Below, piece by piece: positions 5,003 through 59,734 of a DNA stretch of 64,000 nucleotides. This stretch comes from Thalia democratica. Lineage: Eukaryota. The notes beneath the pieces were generated by a model, which was not told the DNA's origin, did no database searches, and saw only the letters and a list, made by a program, of their open reading frames with translations. Numbering within the stretch: the stretch's first letter is position 1; every line of letters begins with the position of its first letter. The stretch covers positions 7,378,001 through 7,442,000 of the forward strand of contig OZ241829.1 in assembly GCA_965202585.1 (NCBI GenBank), in the 5' to 3' direction. The translations under genes and the position numbers were made by a program.

Positions 5003-5065
5003 ATGTCGAGCACCGAATTCTGCTTCAAAAAACACCAAAAACTTTATAAAAAGGATGAAAAATAA
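5003..5065 (+). other. 20-codon sORF (MSSTEFCFKKHQKLYKKDEK) within a ~140-bp repeated module; 8 copies: 5003, 19758, 21437, 34870, 36558, 49873, 50450, 51206
   Basis: ATG-to-stop length is exactly 63 nt in all 8 copies, and the ATG context is acc(a)(t/c)cATG. Coding status is unproven. Confidence 0.35.
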
Positions 5066-5998: not shown

Positions 5999-7370
5999 AT
6001 GTCTAAATCAAGTCAAGTAAATAAAAACAATTTAATTGGAAGCAATCTGGGATCCCAATACAATGTTCTCAGCAAACTTGGAGAGGGAACTTTCGGAACT
6101 GTATATAAGTGCCTTAATATCACAACAAATCAATACGTTGCTATCAAGGCAATGAACCCAAAACATGCAAAAGACGAGTTGGATGCTTTAAAGAGTCTGA
6201 AAGACGCTGATGGAAAGTGTAACTACTTGATTGAATTACTTGAATGGTTTAAGGAAGATAGTTTAGCTTTCCTCGTTAACCCACTCTACGGACCTAATAC
6301 AGAAGTAGCAATAAGAATGCATAATCAACCGTTTAAATTGCAAGATGTACAAATCATGGCTAAACAGCTGATAGAAACTACAAATTTTCTCCATAAAAAT
6401 AAAATGTTGCATACCGATATCAAGACAGCAAATATTTTACTAAACAGGTTAATTGTTTTATGCAATTTTTTTACTATTAAAATTACCTTTGTATAACACA
6501 GATAACAACTTCTTTTTTTTTTGCAATTATACGTCTTACTAAAAATATTTGTTTTTCTTTTATACACTATACAGATATTTATTAATAATTAAATATTATC
6601 AATTAAAAGGTATGTGATTAATTTATGTTTTTATTAAACAGATATTACTACGACAAGTCGAAAAATGATTTTTACATGAAGCCTGACATCAAATCGTGCG
6701 ACCTTGGCTCCATGTACTTTCAGGAAGAATTCGACTATGACGTCATAACAACACTTCAGTACCGTGCCCCTAACGTCATAATGGGTCACAAGGTTGTTTG
6801 AGTATATTACTAAGTAAGTAAACCACTTTATTTTTTTAGGGAAATAATTATAACTAAATATCTTTAACAGAGTAAGCCATTATCTTCAAAAGAAATATAA
6901 TTTTAAAAACAAAGTACTTGTATATTTTGCCTTGTAATTAAACTATAATTTACACACTTAACATAAATTTTATTTCAACAGATCGGGTATCCATGCGACG
7001 TTTGGTCGATCGGTTGCACTTCGTTCGAAATTTTTACAGGAAAATTACTTTTCGAGGTGAAGACTGTTCAGGAACTGTTCAGGATGATCCACTTGATGAT
7101 TGATCTTTTTACTGAACAAGAAGTTCAAAGGATTAACTTAAAAATTGACCGAAGATGATAAAAAGAAGAGGGTTGGTCTAAAGTTGTCAAAGGACGAGAA
7201 AAATGTAGATTTTTTGAAAGAGCCAGAGTTTGTATACATAAAAGGCGAAGTTAAGAAGATGAAGTCTTATTTTTATAAGAACAACAGTGGAGAAAAAAAT
7301 TTGTTGGAAATGATTTTGCATGCTAAATACGGATCCAGTAACAAGAATAAAACTGGAAGACATTATCTAA
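5999..7370 (+). pseudogene. CLK/LAMMER-like CMGC protein kinase, type A; exons 5999-6447, 6642-6792, 6982-7370; two frameshifts in exon 3
   Basis: Motifs LGEGTFG, VAIK, LHTDIKTANILL, CDLGS, TTLQYRAPNV, CDVWSIGC and ELFRMIHLMI (aligned to the CLK EHLAMMERIL). GT-AG introns keep the frame. There is a +1 A at 7141-7144 and a 2-nt deletion near 7315-7320 relative to the paralog at 12500-12889. Confidence 0.88.
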
Positions 7371-9393
7371 ATAATTGTTAATTAATTAATCTATTTTAGA
7401 TATTAAATATGGTAAAATAGTAGAATGTTTAGAATTTTTATTAGTTTAAAAACTACCTTAAAAAAAACTAACTTGTATATATTTTTTTTTTCAATATCAT
7501 AACAGTACGATTTATTTTCAATTAAACGTCTTATAATTTTTTAATTTATACTTATATTTTTTTAGACAATATAACGGCTACTAATAAATTTGTAGATTTT
7601 TTTGTTAAATAAAAATAACTTTTTTATTTAAAACGATCGATAAAGGCAAAAAAATCACAAAGAACTTCACACAACCAAGGGAAGATTTGAGACACTTAAA
7701 ACTAAAATATTCTTACTGTAATTTATTCTTAGATATAAAACATTGAAGTGATAATAATAAGTACAATTTAGTGAGTTGTAATATTTTACGGTAAACTTCA
7801 AATTGTCAACTAATAAACCAGGTGTTTAGTTGTAACAAGTTATGACTTTCGATATAAGTCATGATTTTTGCTGATATTGTAATAAAGTCCAAGTTTTTAA
7901 AAATTCTAAATTTGTTTTATTTCATTTCTATCTTGTAACATTTTGTTGATCAAAAAGGTTTTAAAATAATCATTTTAATAAAATTGTTGCTTCAGCAATT
8001 TCATTAATAAATTAATAAATTTTCTAAATTTTCTAATAGAAATACTATCTATTGTTTAAGCTTGTAGGCAATTTAATTCATTGCAAAAATGTTTTGTTGT
8101 TTATACATTTGATTTGCTAATACAAGATTAATACTTTAAAATACTAACATTCTAAAATTTATACTTTCCTTATTTTAATTTTTTTTTTCACAGTCCCAAA
8201 CACTTCATCGAAATTACAATAAATCTTCCATAGAAAGTAGTTTGTAAAGTTTAATTACATTTATAAATAATTATAACTATTACTTTTTTTTTTACTTGAT
8301 TCTCAGTAAAATCTATCAATAACTTCAAATATAATGAAACACTGTTTTCAAAGATGCTGTAAAATAGTGACTAATTACGCAAAATGTACCCTGGACAAAA
8401 GTTACCTGTTCTTGTTTAAGAAATAATTACAAATGTCACCATGAAAAGCAAAAAGTATTTTCTATATAAAAAACTATTTGTATTATAAGTTTTAGCATAC
8501 ACAAATACACCCAACACTATGTAACTAACTCTATAATGTACTATCTTTACTACTGTATATAAAAATGTTCTTAATAGTAAAACGGTTGACTTACTTTTTA
8601 CTGATCATAGACTTAAGATTTTCTAAATATATTTCCTATTGTTATAAGTATCTAAAATATACATATCTATAAATTATATTTTTTGTAAGCGTTTTTTTTT
8701 TTGATTTATAACCTGTCTATTTTCAAAGCTACTTTATAAACTTCAATCAATAATAAATATTAAAACTTTTTTATACATATTTTGCGTCATTTTTACAACT
8801 TAGCTTAAGTTTTTATAAACTTCAAAATATATACTTAATAAACAGATTATTCTACCTATAATTACGTATTAAAGTTGTATAAAGTATGTAAGAATACCCT
8901 TTTGCTTTACAATTAAGAATAACTTTTTAATCTAAAAGAGTTAATATTATTTCAATGATTTCTAGCTATATAAGATGTTAGTTTTGATAGCTCTATCTAC
9001 ATATATTGAATGATAATAAAGACTAGTATTCTTTTGCTAATACATTTATTAATTTAACTGCTGATAACAGCTAACAGACCGAAAATCAGCTACTCAACAC
9101 CCGTACTTAACCCTCAATTATTAAATTAACTTTAATAAAAACATAAATTAGTTGTGGTTTATAGTCTTAGAAGGATTTTAAAATTTCAAGTTTGAATCAA
9201 CTCAAAAACTAACGCTGTCGAATGCTATATAAATAAAGTTTTAATGCTAATCTATCAAAACCATCTTTAACTATCTGTTTGTTTTCCAATTATTTTTAAA
9301 CTCTATAGTGTACACAATTTCGTTAAACAAAACTGTAAATAGAAAATGAAAACAAATGTTATTTTAAAAACCATTTATCCGTTTTAAATACAG

Positions 9394-12499: not shown

Positions 12500-12889
12500 T
12501 TAGATAAGTTCTTCCAGTTTCACTCTTGTTACTGGATCCGGATTTAGCATGCGAACAATCAATTCAAACAAATCCTTTTCTCCAGCGTCGTTCTTATCAA
12601 AATAAGACTCTATCTTCTTAACTTCGCCTTTTATGTATACAAACTCTGGCTCTTTCAAAAAATCTATTTCATTTTCATCCTTTGACAACTTTTGACCAAC
12701 CTTCTCCTTTTTATCACCTTCGGACAATTTCAAGTTAATCCTTTGAACTTCTTGTTCAGTAAATGGACCAATCATCAAGTGGATCATCCTGAACAGTTCC
12801 TGAACAGTATCCACCTTGAAAAGTAATTTTCCTGTGAAAAGTTCGAATAAAGTGCAGCCGATCGACCAAACATCGCATGGATACCCGAT
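12500..12889 (-). pseudogene. Isolated, intact last exon (C-lobe, 129 aa) of a type-A CLK-like kinase, inverted; upstream exons replaced by the core block
   Basis: IGYPCDVWSIGCTLFELFTGKLLF...ELFRMIHLMIGP...LIVRMLNPDPVTRVKLEELI*. Acceptor cag at 12890-12892, beyond which the sequence is core-block DNA. Confidence 0.88.
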
Positions 12890-12892
12890 CTG

Positions 12893-15800
12893 TTTCAACA
12901 TGTTCACAATCTGTTTGTGTGTAGCCACATTTAAAATAAATCAGCTTAAAACTCCAAGGTCGCTTTTTTTTGATCCCATTTTGCATTGGCGTGGAAATTA
13001 GAAAATCGGTTTGAGGTAAGGTGAAAGTTTCTTCAAATCATTTAAGTCAACACAGAAAAATTAACACCAAAGCATAACTTTTTTAACAACTTTTCTAACC
13101 ATATTTTAGTTCTTTGTGTTTGTTTTTAATGAAATTAGAACTATTCTATTCAATTTATGTTTTTTGAACTAAGTTTATTCTATTCGTTGATATTTGTAAA
13201 TACCTTCTGTTACGGAATTATTGTTTTGAAAACGGAATACTTTTGTACATAGTAAAGTTAAAGAATAATTTAAGATGCTGACTAATTAAACCTAAAATAT
13301 TGATAAAATTTTATCAACAAAACTGATTACCACCGGACTCGATCTCGCGACCTTCTGCTCACGCATCGGGTCGGCGATCGCTGAACCACACAACCACTTG
13401 CTTGTTGACTTCAATGCTGGTATATAAAGTTTAAAAACTTTAGATTTAAATAAGTTCATTTAGTACTTATTAGTTTACCTTTCTGTAAATTGCTATTATT
13501 TTTTTATTTGAAACATATTTACAAAGATAAGACTGTTTTTTTTTACACATAACGTTTACGTGAATTTTAATACTTGAAAGTTTTCCATTCAAAAGCTGCA
13601 TAAGCAGAGCAAGTGTACTTATTAAAGGCAGTTTTGATTTTTGTTGCTTAAATCTAATTTAAAAGAACAAAACTGATTAAATGCTTTGATAATAAGAAAA
13701 CAGCGTGCAAAAACTTTTTTTTGTACATTTAAAGTATTAAAACTTTATAAATTAAACAAACTTATCCAGCTTTAATTAGCTATTATGGCAAAACAGATGC
13801 AAATATAACCTAACAGTTTATATATTATCGAAAATCAGAACTAAAGCAAAGGAGATATATTTCAAAATTAAAATCAACATTATAACAGCATTTATATCAC
13901 AAAGCAAAGTTTTAGAAACATCACAAGCATTTACGTTGTCGTTTTGATATTTTGTTGAACCAGCCAGTAATGAAAATTATATGGGTATGAATAAAATGTG
14001 GTAGAATATCTAAATTTTTAAATCATCAATGCCAGGAATTCTAATTTACCTGCCTGGACTTTTATGTCAAATAAATTCACGTGGTTGCTTATAATGCTGA
14101 TAAATTTAAGATTATTGATTGTAATGTCTAATTAAGCAGAAGTATAATAAAGAATGTAAGGCTGAACTACATTAATCCCAGGCGTTTCTACAGTTAAAAG
14201 ACCAAGTTTACCCTTCATTTTACACAGACGAAATGATTTGATTTTTTAAAATAATGAAAAGTGTTAAGGTTAACCGAGAAAAAAAAGATACTTTAAAAAA
14301 CTTAAACTTAGTAGATGTACTTCAAAACATAGGTAAGTAAGGATATTAATGTCTTTCAAACTAATTAACAGCAAATTTATGCTTAGATATAAGACATTAG
14401 AAAGCATTGTATATGATACACATAAAAAACCCTGTAGACCGAAACCTTGGCTTAGATGGCACTAAATAATTGTTATTAAAATATAACTAAAAATAAAAAC
14501 TTAAAATTATAATGGTACTTAGTCGGTGTAACGGTATTTGATTTATTTTATCAAAAGTACAGAGCTGGTACCTACCATTGTTTATTTATTTTAACACATA
14601 CGGTGGTAAATAAAGTTATATATAATGGTTAAATCTAATAGAGACCTTTAAACTCATAAAGGCTCTAAATGGAATTTTATTTGAACTGTAACTATTACTT
14701 AAAAGAAACAGTTTAATGTTTTAAATTTATAGCTAAATAAATATGTTGTTTGTGATATAAAACTAGAAACGATCATGTAAATCATATAAAAATTAGATTC
14801 ATTTATATACAGCAGTAAAATATTTAAGAGCTAATTGCCATATATATTTGTATCTGTTAGTTTAATTAAGATGCACATTATCCAATACATGGACATATAG
14901 TTAGTGTTATTCATTACTATATAAGTTGCTTTATTCAACTTAAAAATATAGAGCAATTAAATAATTTATAAAACATACCATACACATACAACTAAAGTGT
15001 AAGTGAAATTTATGCTAAACTAAGTTTAAACTGTATAAGACTACAAAGTGATGACGTAATAATAGTAAAAAGGTAAAAATGAAAAATATCACATAATTAC
15101 TTGAAAAATCGTGGACAAAAACAGTCTGATTTATTAGAGTCTAATTTAAAAAATGCCTAAACTGTTTTATACAAGTTAAGACGTAAATACTTACTTGTGT
15201 AAATGGAAAACTTTAGCGTAGATTTTCCAAAATTTAAGTTGTTGTGGAGTGACAACGATACTAATTAAAACGAGAAGTTAATGTACTCACTTACTTTGTA
15301 TAGTTTATCAAGTAACCAACAAAAGATGTTATCAGACCTGCTGATCAACAAAGTAATAATAAATATAATCAAAACAGTGGTCAAACTTGAAATAGACATA
15401 TACCAAATGTTAAATGTAATATAAATTAATTCAATGTACCTACTACAGAATGTTACTTAACATATAAGTTTTAGTAGATAATTATAAATGCCATAACAAC
15501 TAAACAAATGATTAGCTTTGATGTATTACAAACTTGCCATAACTAACTTTCAATTGACCTTTATAATTAAACAAACTAAGATGTAATTTATTTACTAGAC
15601 ATACTAGGTATTTAATACTGTGTAACAATGTAATTAGCTAAATGACGACAATAAAATGATCCTGATAAATAAAATTACAAAGTAAGTTGAAGTGTTTATT
15701 ATAGAATAATACCAGGCTGTCTACTACAAATCTGTAGCGTTTGTAGTACGACACCAAAGATACATACTATAAAACATAAAACTTTACTTGTAATTTATAT

Positions 15801-18800
15801 GTGTTAATATTGAGTTTAAAAGAAAAATAACTTACCAAAAAATTGTGCGTAACTACTCGTACATCAAACAAAAAACTAATTAGGTGCCGACCAGCATAAG
15901 GACGCGGCCTAAAGGACGGCTTTCGTTATTTGTGCAAAAGTCCCGGGAGCAAGAGCTGCTCCGATAGGAGCAGCTCGCAGCGGGAGGGACTTAAAAACAA
16001 ATAACGAAAGCTGTCCGCTACCACTTTAACCCAAAACCGAACTACTTCTTAGAGCTCAGTACCACACTTTTATCTGGTTTGGCTGTCAGGCTTACTAACT
16101 GGGCTCAAAGCGTAATTAGGTTTTTAAGAAAAAATGGTTGGGAGAAAAAGTGAAAAATTTTTCGCCGGCAGAGCCGGCGAAATGACTTAAAAATGATTTT
16201 TTAAATAATCTACCCAAAAATTTTCCAAAAAAACTTTTGATTTGGGGAAATCCCCATTTTGAAAAAAATTTGTGCGGCTTGGCTTAAAAATTAAGTGACT
16301 ACCTTATAGCGTACTCCTTAAACATAACCCTAACTTACTACCATATAGTTGTTAACTAAAAAATGAATGTCTTTTTAGGTGGTAATAGTAGGATTAATCT
16401 TAATTTGGAATATTATTAATTTTTCGAAGGTGTTATCATTGTAATAATAAATACCTATAACCATAAAATTCGTGTGAGACATGTTAAATAGTCTTTTCTT
16501 TTTGGAATGTTTGTTGTGACACAGTCTAATAACAGTATCCAAAACTTATAACTTAAATTTGAGTACTGCTAACATTTTGATTTGATGTTATGTTAACACA
16601 ATATCAATCGAAAACTTTAATAAAACAAATGCTTACTGTTGTTATTAGGCTGATTTACAACAAATATTCAAAAAAAAAAGCCATTTTCACATGTCATTCT
16701 ATAAAGCCACTGCAAGTCATACTTGATCTAGTCAGATAAGAGTCTGGCTTTTGTCAGCTAGTCACAGTTGCTTATAATAACTCTATAAAACATTAAATGG
16801 TTATCAAAGATTTTTTAGCTTTTAAATACACTTCATAAACACTACAAGTAACAAACAACCAGACTCTTATCTAATTTAGTTATATTAGCATTATCAATTA
16901 TTACACTATGCTACATAATTCTAAAATATTTAACAGGAAAAACAGTGGTTAATCATTTCTTGTTATGTTTTGAACAGTTCAGAGACATAGACATGCTTGT
17001 ATATTTTTTCAAAGACTAACTATTACTAAATGTTCAAATACTCTTTGATAAGAATTTCTATGGTGACACTGTCTAATAGTATATCTTAAGTTTTTGTTCT
17101 ACATCATCAAACAGCATTGGTATAATGAAACCAACAAAATAATATCTGATTTAATGCTACACATAGTATCAAGCTGAAGATTAAACAAATACTTATTTTA
17201 TAATATCACTATTAAAATTCCAAACAAAGACTGTTTTTTAGTACTATTAATACTCCAAAAATTAAGTTTAACACATCAGTACAACATAGTCTTTTTATAA
17301 AGATCATACATAGTCAGATAAAGGTCTGGTTTTTGTCAGCTAGTTACATTTAACTTATCATAACTCCATCAACTATAATAACCACTAAATGGTAATCAAA
17401 GTAATAATACACTTAAACTTTGAATTTTACTGTTAACTATAAACACTAAAAGTGACTGAAACAAACCAGACTCTTATCTAAATTAGTAATATGAACATAC
17501 AAAAACACTCAACATAAGTCAGTTGATCAAGCTGCCTTAATGTTGCTTGTGTTCCTACATGTTCACATGTAATAAAGTATATCACTTATACACAAACATT
17601 TTACACTATAGTTTTAATTGCTTAGTGGATAAAAACATAATAATAAAACATTTACTTTAACCGTTAATAACAATGTGTCTCTAAAAGTGTGCAAAGATTT
17701 AAAATTAACTGCTTAATTTTAAAGCTTGTAGCATTCAGAGTTACAACAAACAAAAGAACAGCTTGATTTTTAGCTCTAAAATTGTAATTGAACATTTTAC
17801 ATTGTAATCTTATTACAGAGATTCATAACACATAAGTTTTGACATATAGAAAAGCTAATGAAGTTTAATAGTAACAGCTTTTAGTTAATTTTGCACACTT
17901 TAGAAACTCTGTAGGATATTTTATAATCTAAAATTTTCATTGTAATTAATTCATAATTTTATGACTAGCATTTATGAATACCAGGGCTGCCACTCTTCAA
18001 TTCGAAAACTGTACTCTTTTAACCAAATTTCAGCTTAACTTGAATAAAATTAGAAACTAAGCAGCAAAAGCTGTTAATGTACTTTACTTGATATCAATTG
18101 AGTTTGAGCACTAATTTACACTAATGATATTCTATATTTACAAATAAATGACAATATTTAATGAAACAATTAATTTTCAAGTATTTAAAATTGAGAAAGC
18201 ACTACTAAAAAAATAAGTTTTGGCAGCCCTGAAAAATAATCATTTATTATCTCAACATTAACTATTTTGTATATAAAGCACTTACCTCAGTAAGAGCAGT
18301 AAACCAAGAACAGACCTGATATTCAAATTGCCACAAGAAGGGTTGATATAGATGACTGCTGTAGAAATAGAGATGCCCAATTTGTTTGTGCTTAATAAAA
18401 ACTTTTCAGTGCAACTATGATTAAATAGAAACACATGATAACTCATGTAGCAGACTGCTGATTTGAGACACTTTTTCACCATAAAGGTAAAGAATTTTCT
18501 CTGAAACCATGAAATAAAAAGATAATCAATCATATGGTTAGAGTAGAAGACTGTTGGTTGAGATACTTTTTCAACATAAAGAAAAAGACTTTCCTCTGAA
18601 ATCATGAAAAAATAGATAATTAATCATATGGTTAGAGTAAAAGACTGTTGATTCAAGATACTTTCAAAACATACAGACATTATGTTTATTTACATTTTTT
18701 ACTTGCATAAACAGTTTAAGTTTCAACTGTTAAAGACAATGCTGATTTTTTTTTCAAACCAAGTAATTGATTTTATGTGTCTGCTTTTAGTACCTTTTAT

Positions 18801-19864
18801 TACTTACAAAAACATACAACAAGGTAAACTCTAAAATGATTTATGAAAGTAAAGTTAAAAATGACAAGAGCTGCTACCAGTAACAAAACATTTTACTAAT
18901 GAATGCAATTTCATAAAAATTTCTGCAAACAGAATTTAACATGATTATCACAATAAAGTAGAAGTCTGTTGATTTAAGACAATTTTTCAACATACAGGTA
19001 ACGACTTTTCTGTGAAGTTGTCAACAAAAAGAAAGTAAAACACAAGGTTATCACAACAAAGTAGAAGTCTGCTGATTTAAGACAGTTTTTCAACATACAG
19101 GTAAAGACTTTTCTGTGAAGTTGTCAACAAAAAGAAAGTAAAACACAAGATCATCACTATAAAGTAGAAATCTGTTAACTTAAGACAATTTTTTAACATA
19201 CAGGTAAAGACTTTTCTTTGAAGTTGTAAACAAAAAGATAATTAAACACAAGATCATCACTATAAAGTAGAAGTCTGTTGATTTAAATCACTTTGGCAAC
19301 ATGCAGATGATGTAGATTTGTTTTGTGTTCTTTTTTTTCAACCATAAACAGTTCAAGTTTCAACTTTTTAAGACAACTTTGATTTTTTTCATACTAAGTG
19401 ATTCATACTAAGTGATTGGTTTTGAATTGTATGTGCTTGTAATTAAGCACCTTTTATTACTTATAAAAACTTATAAAAGGAAAACTCTAAAAATACTTAT
19501 GTAAAGAAAGTTTAAGTAAAAATTTGATGACCTACCACTCCTATGAAAACTTTCCTAATATGAATTGCAATTTCTTAAAAAATTTCTGCAAACAGAATTT
19601 TTGTATAATTACGTAACAAATAAAACTTGTGCAAAAAATTCACTTGGTGACATTCACGAGTTCTCTCTTCTCTCGCTTTGATAATTTTAAGCTAATTTTA
19701 AACTTATAGCTATACTTTTTTTAAACCTTGGTTTTTTCAAAAATAAATTTTACCATCATGTCGAGCACCGAATTCTGCTTCAAAAAACACCAAACACTTT
19801 ATAAAAAGGATGAAAAATAAGCAAAATAGAACTTAAAAACTTCAAAGCTTTAAATTTAAATTTA
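12893..19864. repeat. Shared core block, copy 2
   Basis: Starts at gtttcaa(c/a)atgttcacaatc and matches 28011-, 43141- and ~60926- onward. Here it is joined directly to an inverted kinase exon. Confidence 0.95.
13331..13397 (-). mobile_element. tRNA-derived (SINE-head-like) element with Pol III A/B-box-like motifs; copies at 28449-28515, 43580-43646, 61365-61431
   Basis: The minus strand reads gtggttgtgTGGTTCAGCGAtcgcc...gaaggtcgcgAGATCGAGTCCggtg. The T-stem and acceptor stem do not pair, so it is not a functional tRNA. Confidence 0.55.
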
Positions 19865-22300
19865 AAGTTTTGTCAAACTTGTATCTCTTGTATGAAAAGA
19901 TTTAGAAACAATTAGCAGATACTAGTATTCAAACTATGTTCGTAACAAATATCTCTTCTATGTTTTTAAAATTCATTTTTAAACTTTTGTTTTACTTAAA
20001 GATTTACACTTGTATGTATTCATTAACTGCTTAAACAAAACATTACTTACATGTAATATAAATGATTAAAATAGAGGTGCGATTTTAATACAGTTACAGT
20101 AAACTTTTGATTGATTAGTAAATTTTTTTCTAAACTACTTTTTATAGAAACTTGTTGGTTTTTGTACTTATTTATCAACGTTTACTTCAATCTAGTAGAT
20201 ACTCTCAGTTGTGATAAGTATGTGGTTAAAAATTTATGCACACATTAAAGCTTAGCTTAATCTCAAAAACTCTGTACTTTTAATTTTGTCGTTTTTATTT
20301 GTACAACAGTTTATTTTTACATGACTTAAGTTTAGCATTATTTCTTAATTAAAATGTAAATATAATGTTAGTATAATGTAAGTTACAATAAAAAAAATTT
20401 CATCAAGTTTATAGACAACTGTTGAGTCTTTATTTGATGTGTACACTGACAAACTTATCTATATGATTTGACTGTATTTCTATGTATAGTCAAATAAATT
20501 GATAATGTAAACTTTTGGTACTTGTAAATACTGTTGTTTACTTAATTGACCTTTTCAAAATATTATTACATTCAAGTTGTTTGAATAAATACTTGTGAGC
20601 TGCAGAACAGTTGAACTAATTTAGCTCCAATAGAATCTTAAAATTGTAACACAAGTATTCACAGTATTGTGTTTTTAAACTACATACTGTTCCTGATGGA
20701 AAAACCAGCAAATTTTACCTATCATGTAACTTACATATAAACTGAGCTAAAACTTATCATGATACTTGAACAGGTATCATTCAAAAGTAAATACATGTGC
20801 ACTTATTGCTAAATATAGTTTTTAACAAAAGGTGTTTCACTTTATCATAAATATTTCAGTATTATCAAGTTTCACTAAAGTAAAGATTTAACTTTTTTTA
20901 TACTAAAACTATTTTATGTTTTTCATTTAAAACATAGTGATAAAAATGACCAATAATCTAACACTTAAACTAACAGCTACCACTTACATTGAAAGTTACT
21001 GAAATGTAGTTGATGAAACTTATTATAAAAACTTATTGATTAGTGTAATGCTTATTTATAAATTAATGCTTAACTCTAGAATTAAAGAGAACATTTAGTT
21101 GCAATAAGTATGAGAATAAACACTTATACAAACACCAATGTTTAGCTTAACTTTACAAACTATATTAATACGTATCAAAACACTAACAATACTGTTAAGC
21201 GAAGTAAAAAATCTTTAATAAACTGTTAAAGAACAAATTACATTAATTAACTCTATAAAAAAGTGATACAAACAAGCTAAAGTACTTTTTTATCTGAAAA
21301 CTAGACAGAACTGTAAATATGAAAATTTATGCAAATTTTTGAGCAACAAAATTCAATGAAAATGAACAAGTAAGTTTTATTTTTGATTTTAATTTTTTTT
21401 TAAACCTTGTTTTTCTCAAAAATAAACTTTACCATCATGTCGAGCACCAAATTCTGCTTAAAAAAACACCAAACACTTTACAAAAAAGATGAAAAATAAG
21501 CATAATAGAGCTAAAAAACTTCAAAGCTTTGAATTTAGACTATTTTGTAGCTTTGAGTATCTTTCAAACTTGCATGATATGAGTTAGAAACAATTAGCAG
21601 GTGTTAGTACTCGAACTATGTTCATAGCCAATACCTCTGCTATGTTTTTAATTTCAGCTTTGAATATTTGTTATATTTGTAATTTTTCATTAACTGCTTA
21701 AAAAATCGTTATAAGTAAATTTAAATGTTTCAATTCAAACTTTAATTTAATATTATAACCATAAATTTGAGATTAATAGTTTAGTTGGTGTAACTTACTA
21801 TACAAACTTATTGATTAGTTTATTTATTTTTAAAGAGTGCTTCACTCTTATTTTTATGAGTTCATTAGTATTAAACACCTTAATAAAGACGTTGAGGCTT
21901 AGCTTAACTTTACAAACTATGTTTAACACATAACAAATAACTAATGGATATATTAGATTAAAAAAACTGTTAAAGAACAAATTATATCAATATACTCACA
22001 CAAACTAAAGTAGCTTTTATCTAAAATCAATCCAATAACATTAGATGAGTTTATAAAACAAACTAAATTTTAATAACAAAACGTTAAAAAGAACTTTTAT
22101 AAAATAGCAATTACAATTTAACAGCTAAATTAAACTTTAAATATTTTTAAGCTGCTTCAGACTTTTTAATTAGTAAAATGATGTCTTTATAATATTACCT
22201 ATCTTTTTTTTAATTAATAAGATCCTTTTATTTTGAAAAATAAGTAACTAACAAAAAAAAACATGTACACAGCAATACTACTATTTAAAATACAATTATA

Positions 22301-23522: not shown

Positions 23523-24614
23523 ATGGTATTTTTTCTGTGTGACCGTAATATCAACAAAAGAAACTTAACTTTTTGTGTTTGTTTTATGGACTACTTTATT
23601 TTTACTTTGTTGCACTTATTTTGACTTTAACTCAGTAGCTTTTTGTTTTCGTTACTGAGATGGAAAACCTTGTGTTATTTATAAAATAAAAAAAGTGGTT
23701 TTGTACGACTTGAAAACAAACTTTAGAAAGTTTATGTTTTTATCCTGCTTTTATATTTTTGTTTTCAGTAGTTTAACCCTTATAGACAAAATTTGGTAAT
23801 TAAATTTGCTCGATTTGTAAAAATGTGTAGCCTACATTTATAAATCGTGTTCTTTAGATATTAAACGTAAATTTTTAACTTCTTAAAAATTGATAAATAA
23901 TTTTATATAGGACCTCAAAACAAAACAAAGCTACAAAACAGTGGAATTAAATTATAAATAAATTTTGTTTAAACCGTTTTCCGGAGTTTAATGAAGTAAG
24001 ACAAAAATTATTTTAAATATTAGTATTTTAAAGTATGTCGCATCATAACTTTTTTGAAGGTCTTTTTGTTTTTAAATGTGCATTTATGGCAACTTCTAAA
24101 ATTAGTTGTAGACCATAAGTTGCAAACTTGTTTTTCCTAGACGCTAAAATGTAAATGTTTTTCATAACTTCGAACAAGAAATAAAAACAGACAATTATCT
24201 GATATAAATTTAAAAAAGAGATATAGTATTAGAGCTAACGTTTAAAAAAAGTAAAATTCAGTAGTACACTGGTGAGTTAAAAATAGAAACATATGCTATA
24301 TATAATATAAAGTATATATATAAACATATTAACATATTTTTAACGGTCTATATTTCTTTTACTCCTTGGTTTCAGACGAGCGGTCGTTTATCAAAACAAA
24401 GTTATACAAACAAAGTTAAAAAAAAACAAGTTAGTGAAGAATAAAATAAATTGGCAATTGGTGTTTTTATAGCTAAAAAAACTAATTAGAGCTTTTGTTT
24501 TACTTTGTACAATTTTTGTATACGTTCTACAAACAAACAAAATGTTTCAAGAATAACATTTATATCTTAAACACTACACTCTAAATTGCTGGGGACATAT
24601 GGCACTAACTAAGT

Positions 24615-45400: not shown

Positions 45401-48400
45401 TAAACTGTTTTATACAAGTTAAGACGTAAATACTTACTTGTGTAAATGGAAAACTTTAGCGTAGATTTTCCAAAATTTAAGTTGTTGTGGAGTGACAACG
45501 ATACTAATTAAAACGAGAAGTTAATGTACTCACTTACTTTGTATAGTTTATCAAGTAACCAACAAAAGATGTTATCAGACCTGCTGATCAACAAAGTAAT
45601 AATAAATATAATCAAAACAGTGGTCAAACTTGAAATAGACATATACCAAATGTTAAATGTAATATAAATTAATTCAATGTACCTACTACAGAATGTTACT
45701 TAACATATAAGTTTTAGTAGATAATTATAAATGCCATAACAACTAAACAAATGATTAGCTTTGATGTATTACAAACTTGCCATAACTAACTTTCAATTGA
45801 CCTTTATACACAAACAAACTAAGATGTAATTTATTTACTAGACATACTAGGTATTTAATACTGTGTAACAATGTAATTAGTTAAATGACGACAATAAAAT
45901 GATCCTGATAAATAAAATTACAAAGTAAGTTGAAGTGTTTATTATAGAATAATACCAGGCTGTCTACTACAAATCTGTAGCGTTTGTAGTACGACACCAA
46001 AGATACATACTATAAAACATAAAACTTTACTTGTAATTTATATATGTTAATATTGAGTTTAAAAGAAAAATAACATACCAAAAAATTGTGCGTAACTACT
46101 CGTACATCAAACAAAAAACTAATTAGGTGCCGACCAGCATAAGGACGCGGCCTAAAGGACGGCTTTCGTTATTTGTGCAAAAGTCCCGGGAGCAAGAGCT
46201 GCTCCGATAGGAGCAGCTCGCAGCGGGAGGGACTTATGCACAAATAACGAAAGCTGTCCGCTACCACTTTAACTCAAAACCGAACTACTTCTTAGAGCTC
46301 AGTACCACACTTTTATCTGGTTTGGCTGTCAGGCTTACTAACTGGGCTCAAAGCGTAATTAGGTTTTTAAGTAAAAATGGTTGGGAGAAAAAGTGAAAAA
46401 TTTTTCGCCGGCAGAGCCGGCGAAATGACTAAAAAATGATTTTTTAAATAATCTACCCAAAAATTTTCCAAAAAAGTTTTGATTTGGGGAAATCCCCATT
46501 TTGAAAAAAATTTGTGCGGCTTGACTTAAAAATTAAGTGACTACCTTATAGCGTACTCCTTAAACATAACCCTAACTTACTACCATATAGTTGTTAACTA
46601 AAAAATGAATGTCTTTTTAGGTGGTAATAGTAGGATTAATCTTAATTTGGAATATTATTAATTTTTCGAAGGTGTTATCATTGTAATAATAAATACCTAT
46701 AACCATAAAATTCGTGTGAGACATGTTAAATAGTCTTTTCTTTTTTGTTTGTTGTGACACAGTCTAATAACAGTATCCAAAACTTATAACTTAAATTTGA
46801 GTACTGCTAACTTAAACATTTTGATTTGATGTTATGTTAACACAATATCAATCAAAAACTTTTAATAAAATAAATGCTTACTGTTGTTATTAGGCTGATT
46901 TACAACATATATTCAAAAAAAAAAAGCCATTTTCACATGTCATTCTATAAAGCCACTGCAAATCATACTTGATCTAGTCAGATAAGAGTCTGGCTTTTGT
47001 CAGCTAGTCACAGTTGCTTATAATAACTCTATAAAACATTAAATGGTTATCAAAGATTTGCTAGCTTTTAAATACACTTCATAAACACTACAAGTAACAA
47101 ACAACCAGACTCTTATCTAATTTAGTTATATTAGCATTATCAATTATTACACTATGCTACATAATTCTAAAATATTTAACAGGAAAAACAGTGGTTAATC
47201 ATTTCTTGTTATGTTTTGAACAGTTCAGAGACATAGACATGCTTGTATATTTTTTCAAAGACTAACTATTACTAAATGTTCAAATACTCTTTGATAAGAA
47301 TTTCTATGGTGACACTGTCTAATAGTATATCATAAGTTTTTGTTCTACATCATCAAACAGCATTGGTATAATGAAACCAACAAAATAATATTTGATTTAA
47401 TGCTACACATAGTATCAAGCTGAAGATTAAACAAATACTTATTTTATAATATCACTATTAAAATTCCAAACAAAGACTATTTTTGAGTACTATTAATACT
47501 CCAAAAATTAAGTTTAACACATCAGTACAACATAGCCTTTTTATAAAGATCATACATAGTCAGATAAAGGTCTGGTTTTTGTCAGCTAGTTACATTTAAC
47601 TTATCATAACTCCATCAACTATAATAACCACTAAATGGTAATCAAAGTAATATTACACTTAAACTTTGAATTTTACTGTTAACTATAAACACTAAAAATG
47701 ACTGAAACAAACCAGACTCTTATCTAAACTAGTAATATGAACATACAAAAACACTCAACATAAGTCAGTTGATCAAGCTGCCTTAATGTTGCTTGTGTTC
47801 CTACATGTTCACATGTAATAAAGTATATCACTTATACACAAACATTTTACACTATAGTTTTAATTGCTTAGTGGATAAAAACATAATAATAAAACATTTA
47901 CTTTACATTAACTGCTTAATTTTAAAGCTTGTAGCATTCAGAGTTACAACAAACAAAAGAACAGCTTGATTTTTAGCTCTAAAATTGTAATTGAACATTT
48001 TACATTGTAATCTTATTACAGAGATTCATAACACATAAGTTTTGACATATAGAAAAGCTAATGAAGTTTAATAGTAACAGCTTTTAGTTAATTTTGCACA
48101 CTTTAGAAACTCTATAGGATATTTTATAATCTAAAATTTTCATTGTAATTAATTCATAATTTTATGACTAGCATTTATGAATACCAGGGCTGCCACTTTC
48201 AATTCGAAAACTGTACTCTTTTAACCAAATTTCAGCTTATTTTGAATAAAATTAGAAACTAAGCAGCAAAAGCTGTTAATGTACTTTACTTGATATCAAT
48301 TGAGTTTGAGCACTAATTTACACTAATGATATTCTATATTTACAAAAAAATGACAATATTTAATGAAACAATTAATTTTCAAGTATTTAAAATTGAGAAA

Positions 48401-49997
48401 GCACTACTAAAAAAATAAATTTTGGCAGCCCTGAAAAATAATCTTATATGACATTTATTATCTCAACATTAACTATTTTGTATAACATATAAAGCACTTA
48501 CCTCAGTAAGAGCAGTAAACCAAGAACAGACCTGATATTCAAATTGCCACAAGAAGGTTAGTGGCTACAAGGGTTGATATAGATGACTGCTGTAGAAATA
48601 GAAATGTCCAATTTGTTTGTGCTTAAAAAAAAACTTTTCAGTGCAACTATGATTAAATAGAAACACATGATAACTCATGTAGCAGACTGCTGATTTGAGA
48701 CACTTTTTCACCATAAAGGTAAAGAATTTTCTCTGAAACCATGAAAAAAAAAGATAATTAATCATATGGTAAGAGTAGGAGACTGTTGGTTTGAGATACT
48801 TTTTCAACATAAAGAAAAGACTTTTCTCTGGAATCATAAAATATTAGATAATTAATCATATGATCAGAGTAGAATACTGTTGATTCAAGATACTTTCAAA
48901 ACATACAGACATTATTTACATTTCTTTTCTAGCATAAACAGTTTAAGTTTCAACTGTTAAAGACAATGCTAATATTTTTTTCAAACCAAGTAATTGATTT
49001 TATGTGTCTGCTTTTAGTACCTTTTATTACTTACAAAAAGGTAAACTCTAAAATGATTTATGAAAGTAAAGTAAAAAATGACAAGAGCTGCTACCAGTAA
49101 CACAACATTTTACTAATGAATGCAATTTCATAAAAATTTTTGCAAACAGAATTGAACATGATTATCACAATAAAGTAGAAGTCTGTTGAATTAAGACAAT
49201 TTTTCAACATACAGGTAAAGACTTTTCTGTGAAGTTGTCAACAAAAAGAAAGTAAAACACAAGGTTATCACAACAAAGTAGAAGTCTGCTGATTTAAGAC
49301 AGTTTTTCAACATACAGTTAAAGACTTTTCTGTGAAGTTGTAAACAAAAAGATAATTAAACACAAGATCATCACTATAAAGTAGAAGTCTGTTGATTTAA
49401 ATCACTTTGGCAACATGCAGATGATGTAGATTTGTTTTGTGTTCTTTTTTTTCAACCATAAACAGTTCATGTTTCAACTTTTAAAGACAACTTTGATTTT
49501 TTTCATACTAAGTGATTCATACTAAGTGATTGGTTTTGAATTGTATGTGCTTGTACTTTAAGTACCTTTTATTACTTATAAAAACTTATAAAAGGAAAAC
49601 TCTAAAAATACTTATGTAAAGAAAGTTTAAGTAAAAATTTGATGACCTACCACTCCTATGAAAACTTTCCTAAAATGAATTGCAATTTCTTAAAAAATTT
49701 CTGCAAACAGAATTTTTGTATAATTACGTAACAAATAAATCTTGTGCAAAAAATTCACTTGGTGACATTCACGAGTTCTCTCTTCTCTCGCTTTGATAAT
49801 TTTAAGCTAATTTTAAACTTTTAGCTATACTTTTTTTAAACCTTGGTTTTTTCAAAAAAAAAATTTACCATCATGTCGAGCGCCGAATTCTGCTTCAAAA
49901 AACACCAAACACTTTATAAAAAGGATGAAAAATAAGCAAAATAGAACTTAAAAACTTCAAAGCTTTGAATTTAAATTTTAAGTTTTGTCAAACTTGT
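42453..49997. repeat. Shared core block, copy 4
   Basis: Collinear with copies 2 and 3. It has one fewer 103-bp tandem unit and small indels. Confidence 0.95.
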
Positions 49998-52145
49998 AAA
50001 AGGTGTTTCACTTTATCATAATTATTTCAGTATTATTTGTCAAGTTTCACTAAAGTAAAGATTTAACTTTTTTTTATACTAAAACTTTTTTATGTTTTTC
50101 ATTTAAAACATAGTGATAAAAATGACCAATAATCTAACACTTTAAGCTAACAGCTAACATTTACATTGAAAGCTACTGAAATCTAGTTGATAAAACTTAT
50201 TGATTAGTGTAGTACTTATTTATAAATTAATGCTTAACTCTAGAATTAAAGAGAACATTTAGTTGCAATAAGTATGAGAATACACACTTATACAAACACC
50301 AATGTTTAGCTTAACTTTACAAACTATAATGGGACGTATCAAAACACTAACAATGCTGTTAAGCAAAGTAAAAAAACGTTAACCTGTTTTTAAACTTTTG
50401 TCTATGTTTTTTTAAAACCTTGTTTTACTTTTAAATAAATTTTACCACCATGTCGAGCACCAAATCCTGCTTCAAAAAACACCAAACAGTTTATAAAAAG
50501 GATGAAAAATGAGCAAAATAGAACTTTTAAAACTTATAAATACATTTTTTGCTTGTTTTAGAGAATATTTAAAAAATACATTTTTCAATAACATATGAGT
50601 TAAAAGTTAAAACTAATAGCAGATACTAATATATGAACTATGTTGATAACAAACATCTGTGCTACATTTTTAACTTCAGTTTTAAACTTCTGTTTAAATT
50701 TAAAAGTTTTGTATAAATAATTAAACGTACAAAAATAAAACAAACATTAAATGTAAAACTATACAACTTGTTCACAATAATAAATGTATAACACAAGAGT
50801 ATACGAACGAAAAAATTTATTAAAACAATATAAACCTTTTTACTTTATTTATTCAACAAACAAAACTCAATTAAGTTGATTATTTTAGCACAACAATCAA
50901 AAACAAATGTTGATTGAAAATATTTTTTTATAGGTTTATTTTTGTTAACTTCCATTAGTATAAACATTCAACTGCATAAGCACTTTAGTCAAATATTTTT
51001 ATAATAAGAACAGCAAGTCTACCTAAGTGATAAAAACAAGCTAAAATCTTTTTTATCTGAAAACTAGACATAACTGTAAATATGGAAATTTATGCAAACT
51101 TTTGAGCAACAAAATTCAATGAAAATGAACAAGTAAGTTTTACTTTTGAAATTTTATTTAACTTTTTTTTAAACCTTGTTTTTCTCAAAAATAAACTTTA
51201 CCATCATGTCGAGCACCAAATTCTGCTTAAAAAAACACCAAACACTTTATAAAAAAGATAAAAAATAAGCATAATAGAGCTAAAAAACTTCAAAGCTTTG
51301 AATTTAGACTATTTTGTAGCTTTGAGTATCTTTCAAACTTGCATGATATGAGTTAGAAACAATTAGCAGGTGTTAGTACTCGAACTATGTTCATAGCCAA
51401 TACCTCTGCTATGTTTTTAATTTCAGCTTTAAATCTTTGTTATATTTGTAATTATTAATTAACTACTTAAAAAATCTTTATATGTAAATTTAAATGTTTC
51501 AAACCAAACTTTAATTTAATATTATAACCATAAATTTGAGATTGATAGTTTAGTTGGTGTAACTTACTATACAAATTTATTGATTCGTTTATTTATTTTT
51601 AAAGAGTGCTTCACTCTTATTTTTATGAGTTCATTAGTATTAAACACCTTAATAAAGACGTTGAGGCTTAGCTTAACTTTACAAACTATGTTTAACACAT
51701 AACAAAAAACTAATGGATATATTAGATTAAAAAAACTGTTAAAGAACAAATTATATCAATATACTCACACAAACTAAAGTAGCTTTTATCTAAAAACCAT
51801 ACCAAGTGTAGTCATTAAAACTATAAAATGTTTTATATAAACTATTTTGACACTTCTACTTCATACTTCACAGTTAAAATTAATGCACTTATAGTAACAA
51901 ACTTTAGTTTCAAACATAAGTTTGTTAAACCACAAGTGCTTTTTTCTTTTTGTTTTACTTGTTACATTTTCTATATATTTTCATTTATTTGCTCTAAAAC
52001 GGTTTTTGAACTAATTTTAACAACTGAAGGTTTCTTATAATATTATTAATGGTTTTTTTATGAGTATTTGAAGAATGTTGGTTGAAAAATAAAGGATAGG
52101 ATTGATTTTTATGAAATAGCCCATTTTGGAGTGCTTGGTTTTCAC

Positions 52146-53199
52146 CTATTAAAGCCGTCGAACACGAGTATGGAAATAATGAGCGGGAAGCTTTCGACAG
52201 TCTGCACGACGCTGATGGGAAGTGTAACCACTTGGTCGAGGTACTTAATGGTTTTACTAATCACACTTTGGCTTGCCTGGTGTACCCGGTTTACGGCCCC
52301 AATCTGAGCAAGGCAATGGAGATTAATAAGCAGCCGTTTAAAGCGCAAGAGGTTAGAATAATGGCGAAACAGCTGATTGAAGCGGTGAATTTTCTTCACA
52401 AAAACGGAATGTTGCATTGCGATATCAAGCAAAAAAATATTTTATTAAACAGGTTAATAGGACATAAGGACTTTACTTAATTATAATTTTTACTAATTAG
52501 GTGCATTTTTTACTGATCTTTATGATGTTTGTTTAAAACAACTTATAGCCGAGTTAAATGACTTTTTTTTGTTTTTTTAACAATTTATTATACTAAAAAT
52601 TTATATATATAATAATAAATCTTAAAATAGTATCTAAAGTATAACATTAAAAAAAACTTTTACTAAACAGGTTCTACTACGACCAGACTAAAATGTTTTC
52701 TTACTTTATGCCCGATATCAAACTCTGCGACCTTGGTTCTGTACGTTGGGAAAGAGATTTCAACTATGACGTCATAACAAAACTTCAGTACCGCGCTCCT
52801 GACGTCATAATGGGCCATAAAATTGGGTATCCATGTGACGTTTGGTCGATCGGCTGCACTTTATACGAACTCTTCATAGGAGAAGTTCTCTTCGATGCAT
52901 CGACGGTTCAGGAACTGCTCCGGATGATCCATTTTATGATAAAGAATTTTACTGGCGATGAAGTTGAAATGATAAACAGAAAACTCTCTGAAGACGGTGA
53001 AATTGTTGATGTTTTGAATGAGCAAGAGTTGGGACCCATAAAGGGCAAAACCTTGCTTTACGAATCAAAGAAGATGCGTTCTTACACTAATAACCAAAAT
53101 AGAGTTAAGTTATTGTGGAAACTAATAAATAGGATGATTGACCGAAATCCAGTATCAAGAGCAAACCTGAAAGACTTAGTTGAAGAAGAAGAAAATTAA
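52146..53199 (+). pseudogene. 5'-truncated type-B kinase (copy C); exon remnant 52146-52452 and exon 52671-53199; start codon and Gly-rich loop missing
   Basis: Homology starts at ctattaaagcc (the AIK codons). The upstream ~445 bp of the B-type sequence is replaced by 350 bp of unrelated DNA, and there is an in-frame stop at 52112-52114 with no ATG between. It retains HCDIK and DLG. Confidence 0.85.
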
Positions 53200-54420: not shown

Positions 54421-55456
54421 CTTTTGTAATCAATTAAGTTAAAAACACCTGTCATGCATTCAGAGCCGAAGAAAAACAGTGAGAAAGGTTTTCAATCCAG
54501 TTACCAGTATGTTCCAGTATCTAGCAGTTCTATGGCTAATCAAAATTCTGTAATCCAGCAAAACAGTGCCAACTTTCCTACACTGAATGAACAAACAAGC
54601 AGTATAATACGCTCTTATGAACGAAGTGATCATCGAATATTATTGATGTCCGATATACTACTCGAAATGCTGGATATGGTAATAATATGATCCCTTCTGA
54701 TCAACAAAGGGCTTACGAACAATATCGTATACAAAATTTAACAAATAACATGAACGGCGGATTACCCCAACCAGCCAATAGCGGAATGAGGATATCGAGT
54801 GGTGTTGAAAATTACCCACATTTTACAGTTTCTTCTGACACTCCAAAAGACATTCTTTAAGTAGTTCTGCTCAGCTATTTTCTCCAAAATTTAATGGTAT
54901 GAGACCTTATAAGACCAACCAAGCACCTTCTACGACAAATATCGCTCCTACAAAGTACTTGACTAATACTGATTTAACTGCTTCTAGAAAAAATAGTACT
55001 TCAAACGTTTTTGGTCCTACACGCAGTTATGATCCACCTGTATCGAGATTTTTCGGAAGTTACCTTCAAAAAGAACCTAACACCAGTAATTACAACTTGC
55101 TTATGCTCGATTTCAATCGTGTAAACTTCACTTTAAGCAGGGTCATAAGAAACCAGCAGTCAGATCACAGGCTATTGGAAGGACTCGAGCAGCAAGTAGA
55201 CAGTAACCACAAAACGTATGAAAGTCGCTTTGATTTGCTTGATCAGAGTGCAGCTGATAGTCAAAACTGTTTTGGTAACATTGTCAAGCGCTTTGACTAT
55301 TTTGATAAACTTCATGATGATGCAAAAGGCGAAAGAACGCAAAGGTGCTCAACCATTGCAAGTGTGTTACAAGTCGTTTTTCTAATTGCTATAATTGTGT
55401 TATTGTCTGTACAGTTGTACTACATTAATCAGCTCTTTTCTAGTTTCTCTGAATAA
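54421..55456 (+). pseudogene. Family-X gene copy X1 (Ser/Thr/Asn-rich, coiled-coil, C-terminal TM), with two frameshifts
   Basis: Three reading frames (54454-~54628, ~54630-54848, ~54849-55456) together align with the intact 58856-59734 protein. The upstream intron donor reads AT instead of GT. Confidence 0.8.
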
Positions 55457-58400: not shown

Positions 58401-58855
58401 AAAAGTTTCTTCAAACTTTAATTTATACTTATGTTGAAAAAAGTTAGATTTTAAATTAACAAAATTATATAAATTATAATATTAAGTTAACAGATACACA
58501 ACAAAATTCAGTAAAAATTAATCATAACTTTTACTCATAAATATTTTACCAATTAATAGTATTTAGTCAAAGATAAATCACGCGTTTTATAATACAGTGC
58601 TTATTAGTTGATCTTCAGTACAACTTTTTTATTAAATACCTAACAAATTTTGAAAAATTACTTTTTATAAATAAACCATACCGTACTTGTGTAGTTATAA
58701 AGGTCTGTTAATTATAGTATAATAAGTAGAAATATTTTATAAGTAAAAAAAATACAGTTTACAATCATAATAATTGTAAGTGTTTTCTTTGAATATTTTC
58801 AAAATAATGTTTGTTCTTGCAGCTTTTGTATTTGATTAAATTTAAAACACCTGTC

Positions 58856-59734
58856 ATGCATTCACACCCGGAGAAAAACAGGGAGAAAGGTTTTCAATCC
58901 AGTTACCAGTATGTTCCAGTATCTAACAGTTCTACGACTAATCAAAATCCTGGAATCCAGCAAAATAGTGTGATTGTTCCTACACTGAAGCAGTTTTCTG
59001 AACCAACAAGCAGTATAATACGCTTTGATGCATTAAGTGCTTCAACATCCTCAAATGTTGTTCACTCTAGTGGACAATATTCTACTCAAAATAATGGATC
59101 TGGAAACAGTATGATGAAGGGCGGAGTGCCTCAACCAACAAACTGTGTGATGAAAACGTCTTTACCGAGTGGTGTTAAAAGTTATCCAGCTTCTACAGTT
59201 TCTTCTGACGCAAGTAGCATAGCTCCATTACTTGCTGCCAGTTCTAGTAATTCGCGGTCAATAAACACGGTTACAAATCAAGTACTTTCTACAACAAATT
59301 TAGTTCCTATGAACTATTCGGCTAACAATGACTTATCAAATTATGGAAGTTTTATACAAAGAGGTTATCAACCGATCCAATCCCACCCTATCGATGATGA
59401 TGACACCTCTAACCGTGTATCAATATTTCGTTTCAACTTCATAAACCACACATTGAACGAAGTTGTAAGAAACGAGCAAGCAGTTATCAATCGACTAAAT
59501 GGTATTGAACGGCAAATCAAAGACAACCAAGAAGCGTCTGTGAGATGTTTTAATTTGTTGAATCAGAGTGCAGATAGTATACAGAAGTGTTTTGATAGAC
59601 GTTTTGATGATCTTTATAAAAAGTTTAAGAAATTTATAACGGTTGCATTTATTGTTGGTATAATCTTGAATATTTTCTCTTTTGTATTAATTATAATGTC
59701 GGCTGCACAGTTGTACTATATAAACCAGCTGTAA
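58856..59734 (+). CDS. Family-X protein X2, 292 aa from MHS: low-complexity N-terminus, heptad-like region, C-terminal hydrophobic helix (predicted tail-anchored membrane protein)
   Basis: Uninterrupted ORF whose C-terminus is FITVAFIVGIILNIFSFVLIIMSAAQLYYINQL*. A 47-nt GT-AG intron (58776-58822) upstream is conserved in paralogs. The track's TTG start at 58811 lies inside that intron. Confidence 0.8.
   Translation: MHSHPEKNREKGFQSSYQYVPVSNSSTTNQNPGIQQNSVIVPTLKQFSEPTSSIIRFDALSASTSSNVVHSSGQYSTQNNGSGNSMMKGGVPQPTNCVMKTSLPSGVKSYPASTVSSDASSIAPLLAASSSNSRSINTVTNQVLSTTNLVPMNYSANNDLSNYGSFIQRGYQPIQSHPIDDDDTSNRVSIFRFNFINHTLNEVVRNEQAVINRLNGIERQIKDNQEASVRCFNLLNQSADSIQKCFDRRFDDLYKKFKKFITVAFIVGIILNIFSFVLIIMSAAQLYYINQL

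Follow-up and report, generated by a model that had tools for sequence, protein, structure and literature searches.

A probably young, largely decaying tandem array of divergent CLK-like kinase and predicted tail-anchored protein genes in Thalia democratica

Ampliconic germline arrays, such as mouse Slx/Sly, the primate X/Y ampliconic genes, and Drosophila Stellate/Su(Ste), consist of large, near-identical tandem units of at least 10 kb that carry coding and truncated copies, and they are homogenized by unequal exchange and gene conversion. Here, we analyze a 64-kb stretch of the 802-Mb genome of the pelagic tunicate Thalia democratica (contig OZ241829.1, hereafter C5, positions 7378001–7442000; "the window"), which contains part of an array of the same general form, composed of genes for a divergent CLK-like protein kinase and genes for a second protein, denoted X. 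In contrast to the arrays above, this one co-amplifies two unrelated genes, and it is not known to have a drive phenotype. A literature search returned no description of the locus, and the X family was found described nowhere.

The locus also shares amplified near-identical tandem copies, accompanied by truncated or antisense partners, with the germline conflict arrays Stellate/Su(Ste) and Smok/Tcr, to which an earlier note on this DNA had compared it. Both analogies are loose. Stellate encodes a regulatory subunit resembling CK2-beta rather than a kinase; the Smok kinase is of the MARK-like type, and Tcr is one fusion gene that lies within a haplotype protected by an inversion. The likeness to Smok/Tcr lies in a multi-copy kinase family, an altered copy of which, in Smok/Tcr, matters in the germline; however, the inversion-protected haplotype, the fusion, and the transmission bias are known for Smok/Tcr and not for the array. 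The ROP5 cluster of Toxoplasma is likewise a tandem series of kinase-fold genes that vary in copy number and have altered catalytic residues, but its products are parasite effectors that carry signal peptides and are secreted, whereas the array proteins look cytosolic, belong to a free-living animal, and are each paired with a second gene.

Our analysis indicates that the locus is probably a young, lineage-specific, and largely decaying ampliconic array of ~0.84 Mb, seeded by a block containing the kinase and X and retaining a few working copies.

Tandem architecture and genomic extent

The window has a GC content of ~27% along its whole length and comprises at least four head-to-tail units of ~15 kb each. 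Self-comparison with blastn aligned positions 12892–32771 with 28010–47905 at 99.0% identity across 19.9 kb (unit B versus its neighbor B′), confirming the tandem array that the earlier note had proposed. A spacer is present five times in the window; its proposed length of ~7 kb was correct, whereas the copies, which had been called identical, are 96–99% identical to one another. Intact, catalytically altered, truncated, and antisense gene copies do occur side by side, and unit A does contain two kinase copies (K-A1 and K-A2, the latter its third exon only). In units B, B′, and C, the kinase is followed by X sequence after 1.1–1.25 kb, in agreement with the ~1.1 kb noted previously, but in B and B′ that sequence is a short fragment rather than a full X copy.

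We rejected a mobile element or a hidden gene as the identity of the spacer, since ORF lists and Rfam and tRNA scans revealed no open reading frame (ORF) of at least 120 amino acids, no RNA family, and no tRNA; a repeat search detected neither terminal nor inverted repeats; and all 22 genome-wide matches that were scored (of 2331 candidates) fall within the C5 array. In C-type spacers elsewhere in the array, the last part of the spacer query (5940–6801) was matched twice, with the second match overlapping the first.

A genome search places the array at 6.889–7.729 Mb of C5 (~840 kb), with at least 57 kinase and at least 60 X loci; the window represents ~7% of it. Array-type units are also carried by the unplaced contigs C281, C600, and C787. 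Four unit subtypes, A to D, account for the arrangements listed in Table 1. Many copies are incomplete: 18 of the 57 kinase loci match the second half of the gene only, and many X loci are reduced to C-terminal ORFs of 140–185 residues or to 70-residue fragments. Together, the two families are confined to ~0.1% of the genome. Outside the array, we found one kinase copy on contig C4 (L036, C4:47327000–47333000), in which HSY replaces HxD and the frame is interrupted by a stop; the intron position is retained, so that this is a DNA-level copy, not a retrocopy. An N-terminally short X copy lies on C8 and an X-like fragment on C4, and no partner gene was present within the DNA fetched around the C4 kinase (6 kb), the C8 X copy, or the C4 X-like fragment. 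Linkage of the two families, which the earlier note had proposed to test genome-wide, holds for the C5 array, in which both are concentrated, but not for these few degenerate single copies on C4 and C8.

Read-derived data bear on whether the array is real. Contigs assembled from three short-read runs of two independent studies hold 67–73% of the sampled sequence words of the window, and they cover exons, intron, spacers, and flanks evenly, which marks the runs as DNA. The junction of position 22026 to 22470, which defines the truncated C-type kinase, is found in read contigs of both studies. Because read contigs of two studies hold ~70% of the words together with this junction between B and C structures, the array and its variants are not purely a product of assembly. 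Over-expansion of a collapsed or mis-expanded repeat with few real copies could be suspected from runs of units without a single difference over 6.8 kb, a kind of sequence that assemblers miscount, and from the three unplaced contigs carrying the same units. We nonetheless judge it extremely improbable: in addition to containing most of the words and the B/C junction, the read contigs break into pieces of 180–450 bp with high word depth, the pattern expected of many near-identical copies, and the subtypes differ by real structural changes and by 1–4% substitutions. A search of RNA runs for the locus found none holding it.

The segment unique to K-B (22002–22403) had a word depth, relative to that of the segment shared with K-C (22404–23073), of ~0.2 in run X1, compared with ~0.5 in both X2 and X3. 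This is a hint that samples vary in their proportions of unit types, with the caveat that contig depth does not measure copy number.

The kinase and X proteins

All kinase pieces in the window match the Pfam family Pkinase (PF00069) above the cut-off of 31.7 bits; the K-B exons score 73.7 and 54.4 bits, and exon 1 of K-A1 reaches 82.8 bits. Among solved structures, CLK1 is the top match for both halves of K-B (E ~1e-15 and ~1e-14; exons searched separately), in an alignment that spans the CMGC insert through to the end of the domain, with DYRK2 and PRP4 within a few bits. The array kinases differ from CLK/LAMMER kinases in being only ~30–35% similar to them and in two defining features. The C-lobe LAMMER signature EHLAMMERILG is degenerate, reading ELLRMIHFMIENF or ELFRMIHLMIGPF; the segment aligned to it is QELLRMIHFMIENF in K-B and QELFRMIHLMIGPF in K-A, and ELLRMIHFMIENF aligns where CLKs carry EHLAMMERILGPL. 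The array kinases also have no N-terminal RS domain: the kinase domain begins at ORF residue 21–30, and the upstream frame is closed. K-B in addition lacks the catalytic-loop Lys and the Gly of DFG. "Divergent CLK-like CMGC kinase", close to the wording of the earlier note, is a fair label, although two of the three LAMMER-defining features tested fail.

No kinase copy in the window combines an intact frame with canonical catalytic residues, and every one fails the full motif set (GxGxxG, VAIK Lys, HxD, catalytic-loop Lys and Asn, DFG, and APE). In K-A1, exon 1 is intact (GEGTFG, VAIK, and HTDIKTAN) and exon 2 lies at ~6673–6792; because exon 3 is frameshifted, with tblastn matches in two frames and stops inside the match, K-A1 is a pseudogene. 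Its 3′ part (6977–7557) forms an inverted repeat with K-A2 (12894–12310; 85% over 589 bp). The two exons of K-B are separated by a 217-nt phase 2 intron with GT..AG ends. Its catalytic loop reads HCDINQEN, in which the catalytic-loop Lys is replaced by Asn, and DLR occupies the DFG position; judged by these residues, K-B is probably a pseudokinase. This type is represented by ten copies in the array that are 98–100% identical. A joint of 22782 to 22975 near the kinase intron was not accepted as evidence of splicing, since it does not match the GT..AG intron. K-C retains HCDIKQKN and DLG, and its start codon and first 57 codons, including the Gly-rich loop and most of the VAIK strand, have been replaced.

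Intact kinase genes are found elsewhere. The K-A copy L049 (contig C281:1777–5175) has GT–AG introns, compatible frames, and all catalytic motifs, and a similar complete K-A gene is located at 7.625 Mb of C5. The full catalytic motif set is present in the K-A copies L048 and L049 as GEGTFG, AIK, HGDIKTAN, DLG, and APD. K-A and K-B are ~50% identical. A second intron lies between GHK and IGYPCDVW in K-A (L049 and L048) and is absent from K-B, so the types differ by one intron gain or loss. The wider family includes single-exon CLK-like kinases with ORFs of 300–420 residues, 30–41% identical to the array kinases, several of them clustered (Table 1). Further kinase relatives, at 57–72% identity, occur in European Nucleotide Archive (ENA) marine assemblies (P0062–P0088), on contigs of at most 2.8 kb, none of which agrees in length with a contig that carries X.

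Hydropathy and structure prediction agree with the earlier description of X as tail-anchored. Residues 1–184 of X-alpha are rich in Ser, Asn, and Thr and disordered, and are followed by one long helix (residues 185–291). The most hydrophobic 19-residue window is 263–281 of 292 (mean Kyte–Doolittle value 2.87), ahead of a C-terminal tail ending in QLYYINQL. AlphaFold2, given an alignment of ten diverged copies, returned a predicted local distance difference test score (pLDDT) of 73–91 for the helix and below 50 for residues 1–184. X has a single membrane segment, no more than ~30 residues from the C-terminus, together with a polar N-terminus and no signal peptide. These features support a predicted tail-anchored helical topology. 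X thus resembles SNARE-type tail-anchored proteins in its lack of a signal peptide, its long helix preceding a single C-terminal membrane segment, and its short tail, but differs from them in its RFDxLD-type repeats, in the ~185 low-complexity residues ahead of the helix, and in the lack of any SNARE match. In Pfam, X has no profile match to the SNARE motif or to any other family (X-alpha, none at E up to 0.01; X-beta, none better than E = 0.15).

A word search with X matched only a 99% identical protein, and an Atlas search gave no match. A profile search of 1.84 billion representatives yielded eleven short X-like proteins (P0004–P0014), all from ENA marine assemblies; compared with the genome, P0010 is 51% and P0004 at most 72% identical to any copy here. 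The value for P0010 refers to an X-like gene at the edge of the array (C5:6899654–6900541). Because these marine relatives are only 51–72% identical, X is lineage-restricted rather than a single-species orphan, and the term "orphan" used previously does not hold in the strict sense. In the searches listed here, X is known only from the Thalia democratica genome and from marine metagenome contigs. With relatives of both families in such assemblies, at least one further marine organism carries both. When metagenome contigs were scanned, neither P0009 nor profile A1 retrieved a relative. The ENA relatives of X include alpha-like (P0005) and beta-like (P0004, P0007, and P0008) types.

The RFDxLD-type repeats of the X helix gave weak profile matches (X positions ~200–300; E 1e-8 to 1e-3) to bacterial proteins (P0015–P0061) with 11-residue KRFDxIDKRF repeats of the DUF7310/DUF16 types, several of which also end in a membrane segment. 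We rejected these coiled-coil proteins as homologs of X; the resemblance is at the level of the motif and probably reflects convergence.

X-alpha and X-beta are ~43% identical. The X pseudogene of unit C is a mosaic of an alpha-like N-terminus and a beta-like C-terminus, of which a 185-residue C-terminal ORF (54899–55456) remains open. An ORF of 184–185 residues that starts from Met (MRPYKTNQ...) and contains only the X-beta helix and membrane segment is found at this position and in many A-type units (for example, C5:7004477 and C5:7304340). Open where the upstream part is broken or missing, it could encode a short isoform or could simply reflect recent decay. The antisense fragment in unit B is the remnant of an inverted full-length X-beta, which is found intact at C5:7242765–7243676 and on C281.

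Table 1. Features of the window, unit subtypes of the array, and related loci. Positions are those of the window unless a contig is named.
Feature	Position	Strand	Size or copies	Details
Kinase K-A1, three-exon type	5999–7381	+		Pkinase 82.8 bits; tblastn
Kinase K-A2, third exon only	12503–12928	−		Open frame extends 36 nt into spacer edge
Kinase K-B	22301–22776 and 22994–23522	+	~334 aa	Two exons, open frame
Kinase K-B′	37421–37896 and 38114–38642			Twin of K-B, identical motif changes
Kinase K-C	~52139–52452 and 52671–53199	+		97% DNA identity to K-B
X-beta N-terminal fragment, antisense	24618–24872	−	~70–85 aa	Unit B
X-beta N-terminal fragment twin, antisense	39736–39978			Unit B′
X pseudogene	54454–55456	+		Three frames via 74-nt and 5-nt insertions
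X-alpha, intact	58856–59734	+	292 aa	Single-exon ORF; only intact X in window
Spacer, full copy	12892–19864	.	~7 kb	Self-blastn
Spacer, further copies	28010–34976; 43141–49998			Self-blastn
Spacer, partial copies	1–5109; 60926–64000			Clipped by window start and window end, respectively; self-blastn
103-bp minisatellite, one per spacer	18939–19286; also 4183–4530, 34051–34398		3.4 copies	Tandem Repeats Finder and repeat search
103-bp minisatellite, spacer ahead of unit C	49156–49400		2.4 copies	Versus 3.4 in the others
95-bp repeat (minisatellite)	18447–18664			Adjoins the 103-bp minisatellite
A unit			11–15 kb; ~20 copies	K-A (− strand), mostly without exon 1, facing 140–185-aa C-terminal X ORF
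B unit			15.1 kb; 10 copies, six in a local run	K-B and antisense X-beta fragment
C unit			~19 kb; ~10 copies, five or more in a local run	Truncated kinase, broken X-beta, X-alpha
D unit			22 kb; 3 copies	K-B-like and K-A-like kinases (− strand) facing intact X-beta (306 aa) and intact X-alpha (291 aa)
Single-exon CLK-like paralogs	C6: 13.44–13.68, 18.89, 19.38, and 30.97 Mb; C181; C1; C8; C9			

Selection, turnover, and kinase–X pairing

The splits between K-A and K-B and between X-alpha and X-beta are old, with synonymous divergence (dS) of ~0.8–1.2, whereas units of the same type differ by 0–4%, in the cargo as much as in the spacer; between B and C units, divergence is 2.6% in exons and 1.8–2.7% in noncoding sequence. 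Old paralogs were therefore co-amplified recently. B-unit spacers ~300 kb away are 100% identical. Runs of three to six identical units, subtypes that differ by deletion or inversion, and patchy differences between sister units bear out the birth-and-death turnover suggested previously.

Differences between B and B′ fall in three patches, two of which lie over kinase exon 1 and the X fragment. Over the first 35 codons of X-alpha (58856–58960), dS relative to X-beta (L014 and others) is 0.10, and it is 0.9–2.1 over the remainder, which suggests gene conversion or a shared 5′ module. Together, the B/B′ patches, the X 5′ ends, and the mosaic X of unit C fit gene conversion that is still ongoing.

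The ratio of nonsynonymous to synonymous divergence (dN/dS) is 0.2–0.5 in all kinase comparisons and 0.4–0.98 over whole X genes. Within X, the X-beta helix and membrane segment mostly give 0.1–0.5 (one pair reaches 0.84 in the membrane segment), and the disordered part gives 0.6–1.1. No partition has dN/dS above 1 except ~1 in the disordered region of X, and positive selection is not indicated in these comparisons. Because both families show purifying selection, the kinase and X are, or were until recently, working genes.

These observations can be combined into a scheme for the origin of the array. The starting block would have held old paralogs of two neighboring genes: a CLK-like CMGC kinase consisting of the kinase domain only (K-A and K-B), and a tail-anchored X with a disordered N-terminal half and a membrane-proximal helix (alpha and beta). 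The 7-kb spacers would have served as sites of recurrent unequal crossing-over and segmental duplication, by which the array would have been built; deletions, inversion of X-beta, and local re-amplification would have produced the four unit subtypes; and gene conversion would continue to swap patches between copies. Most copies are by now dead, being 5′-truncated, frameshifted, or fragmentary; the intact minority is made up of several X genes of both types, alpha and beta, and of K-A genes whose catalytic motifs are canonical. Joint copying would account for the adjacency of the kinase and X. By analogy with lineage-specific kinase expansions, which are often sperm- or germline-expressed, our guess would be that expression is germline-biased and that high copy number is tolerated or mildly favored for dosage.

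Several points weigh against this scheme. The array map and the ancestral-unit model derive from match coordinates, not from aligned sequence of the full 840 kb, and copy numbers are assembly counts not calibrated against read depth. The whole array may be silent, or its fragments may act as RNA. Moreover, the frames of all ten K-B copies are open despite loss of the catalytic-loop Lys and the DFG Gly, which could reflect a selected pseudokinase rather than decay. Between B and B′, coding differences comprise six synonymous and four nonsynonymous changes (P = 0.01 against neutrality); this skew would also be compatible with conversion from a constrained donor.

In the drive, suppressor, or toxin–antidote module raised in the earlier note, an intact kinase and X would work in the germline as a driver with its target or a toxin with its antidote, truncated, antisense, and inverted copies would suppress them through decoy proteins or small RNAs, and the resulting arms race would drive amplification. 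Very high copy number and recent turnover point in that direction, as does the fast evolution of both families (dN/dS 0.2–0.75). Every K-B is followed, 1.1 kb downstream, by an antisense X fragment, so that read-through would give antisense X RNA, and the 589-bp inverted kinase repeat of unit A could form a hairpin; the ten open K-B frames with altered catalytic residues and synonymous-skewed differences can be read in the same way. Kinase and X are tightly linked in the array; toxin–antidote pairs of the peel-1/zeel-1 type would, beyond tight linkage, be inherited as one presence/absence haplotype and show parent-of-origin lethality. We consider such a module very unlikely, however, since the RNA runs searched gave none holding the locus, dN/dS does not rise beyond ~1 anywhere, and the pairing is explained by co-duplication. 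A still more specific version would have the ten open-frame K-B copies as selected pseudokinases that join X and the fragments, antisense or inverted, in a germline conflict system (a driver and decoy or a gamete-compatibility pair) whose arms race explains the 840 kb. No such system is known to us from tunicates, and this one would combine a kinase with a membrane anchor; we regard it as highly improbable.

Within the array, the median distance from X to the nearest kinase is 2.4 kb, versus 3.2 kb for random placement, and the difference is not significant (P ~0.07). Pairs are oriented head-to-head in 28 cases, in tandem in 14, and convergently in 13. Gaps of 1.1–1.7 kb and the head-to-head pairs argue against a kinase–X operon. 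Starting from a D-like block, deletion or inversion could account for every arrangement, and co-duplication of one ancestral block is sufficient to explain the pairing.

Alternatively, amplification might have served the dosage of a working pair in one pathway, in which, for example, X at an organelle membrane is the target or docking site of the kinase; many copies would be kept because some cell type, such as gametes, requires a burst of product. That both families occupy one locus in these stereotyped arrangements, that intact copies of both are under purifying selection, and that D units retain two kinases and two intact X genes would all be expected of such a pair. Most copies are broken, however, and among the kinases it is the defective types (B, C, and truncated A) that have been amplified most. 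X-alpha contains no S/T-P or R-x-x-S/T sites, which CMGC/CLK kinases normally use; this absence offers mild evidence against a role for X-alpha as a standard CMGC substrate. On this balance we think dosage amplification of a working pair unlikely. For the gamete-signaling module that the earlier note had also suggested, neither the site content of X-alpha nor the X–kinase distance, which is not significantly below random, gives positive evidence. A recent, largely decaying expansion of a kinase–X block thus remains our preferred reading.

Implications for the gene families and the genome

For annotation of this genome, most gene models in the array should be flagged as pseudogenes. Read as a largely decaying expansion, the locus would offer a well-resolved case of a two-gene block that grew to a near-megabase array and then decayed, with subtypes, gene conversion, and genes in graded stages of loss. 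The protein family X is likewise defined here, by its disordered N-terminal half, its RFDxLD-repeat helix, and its predicted tail anchor ending in QLYYINQL. Were germline small RNAs or biased transmission to be found, the array would provide a tractable conflict system in a chordate relative.

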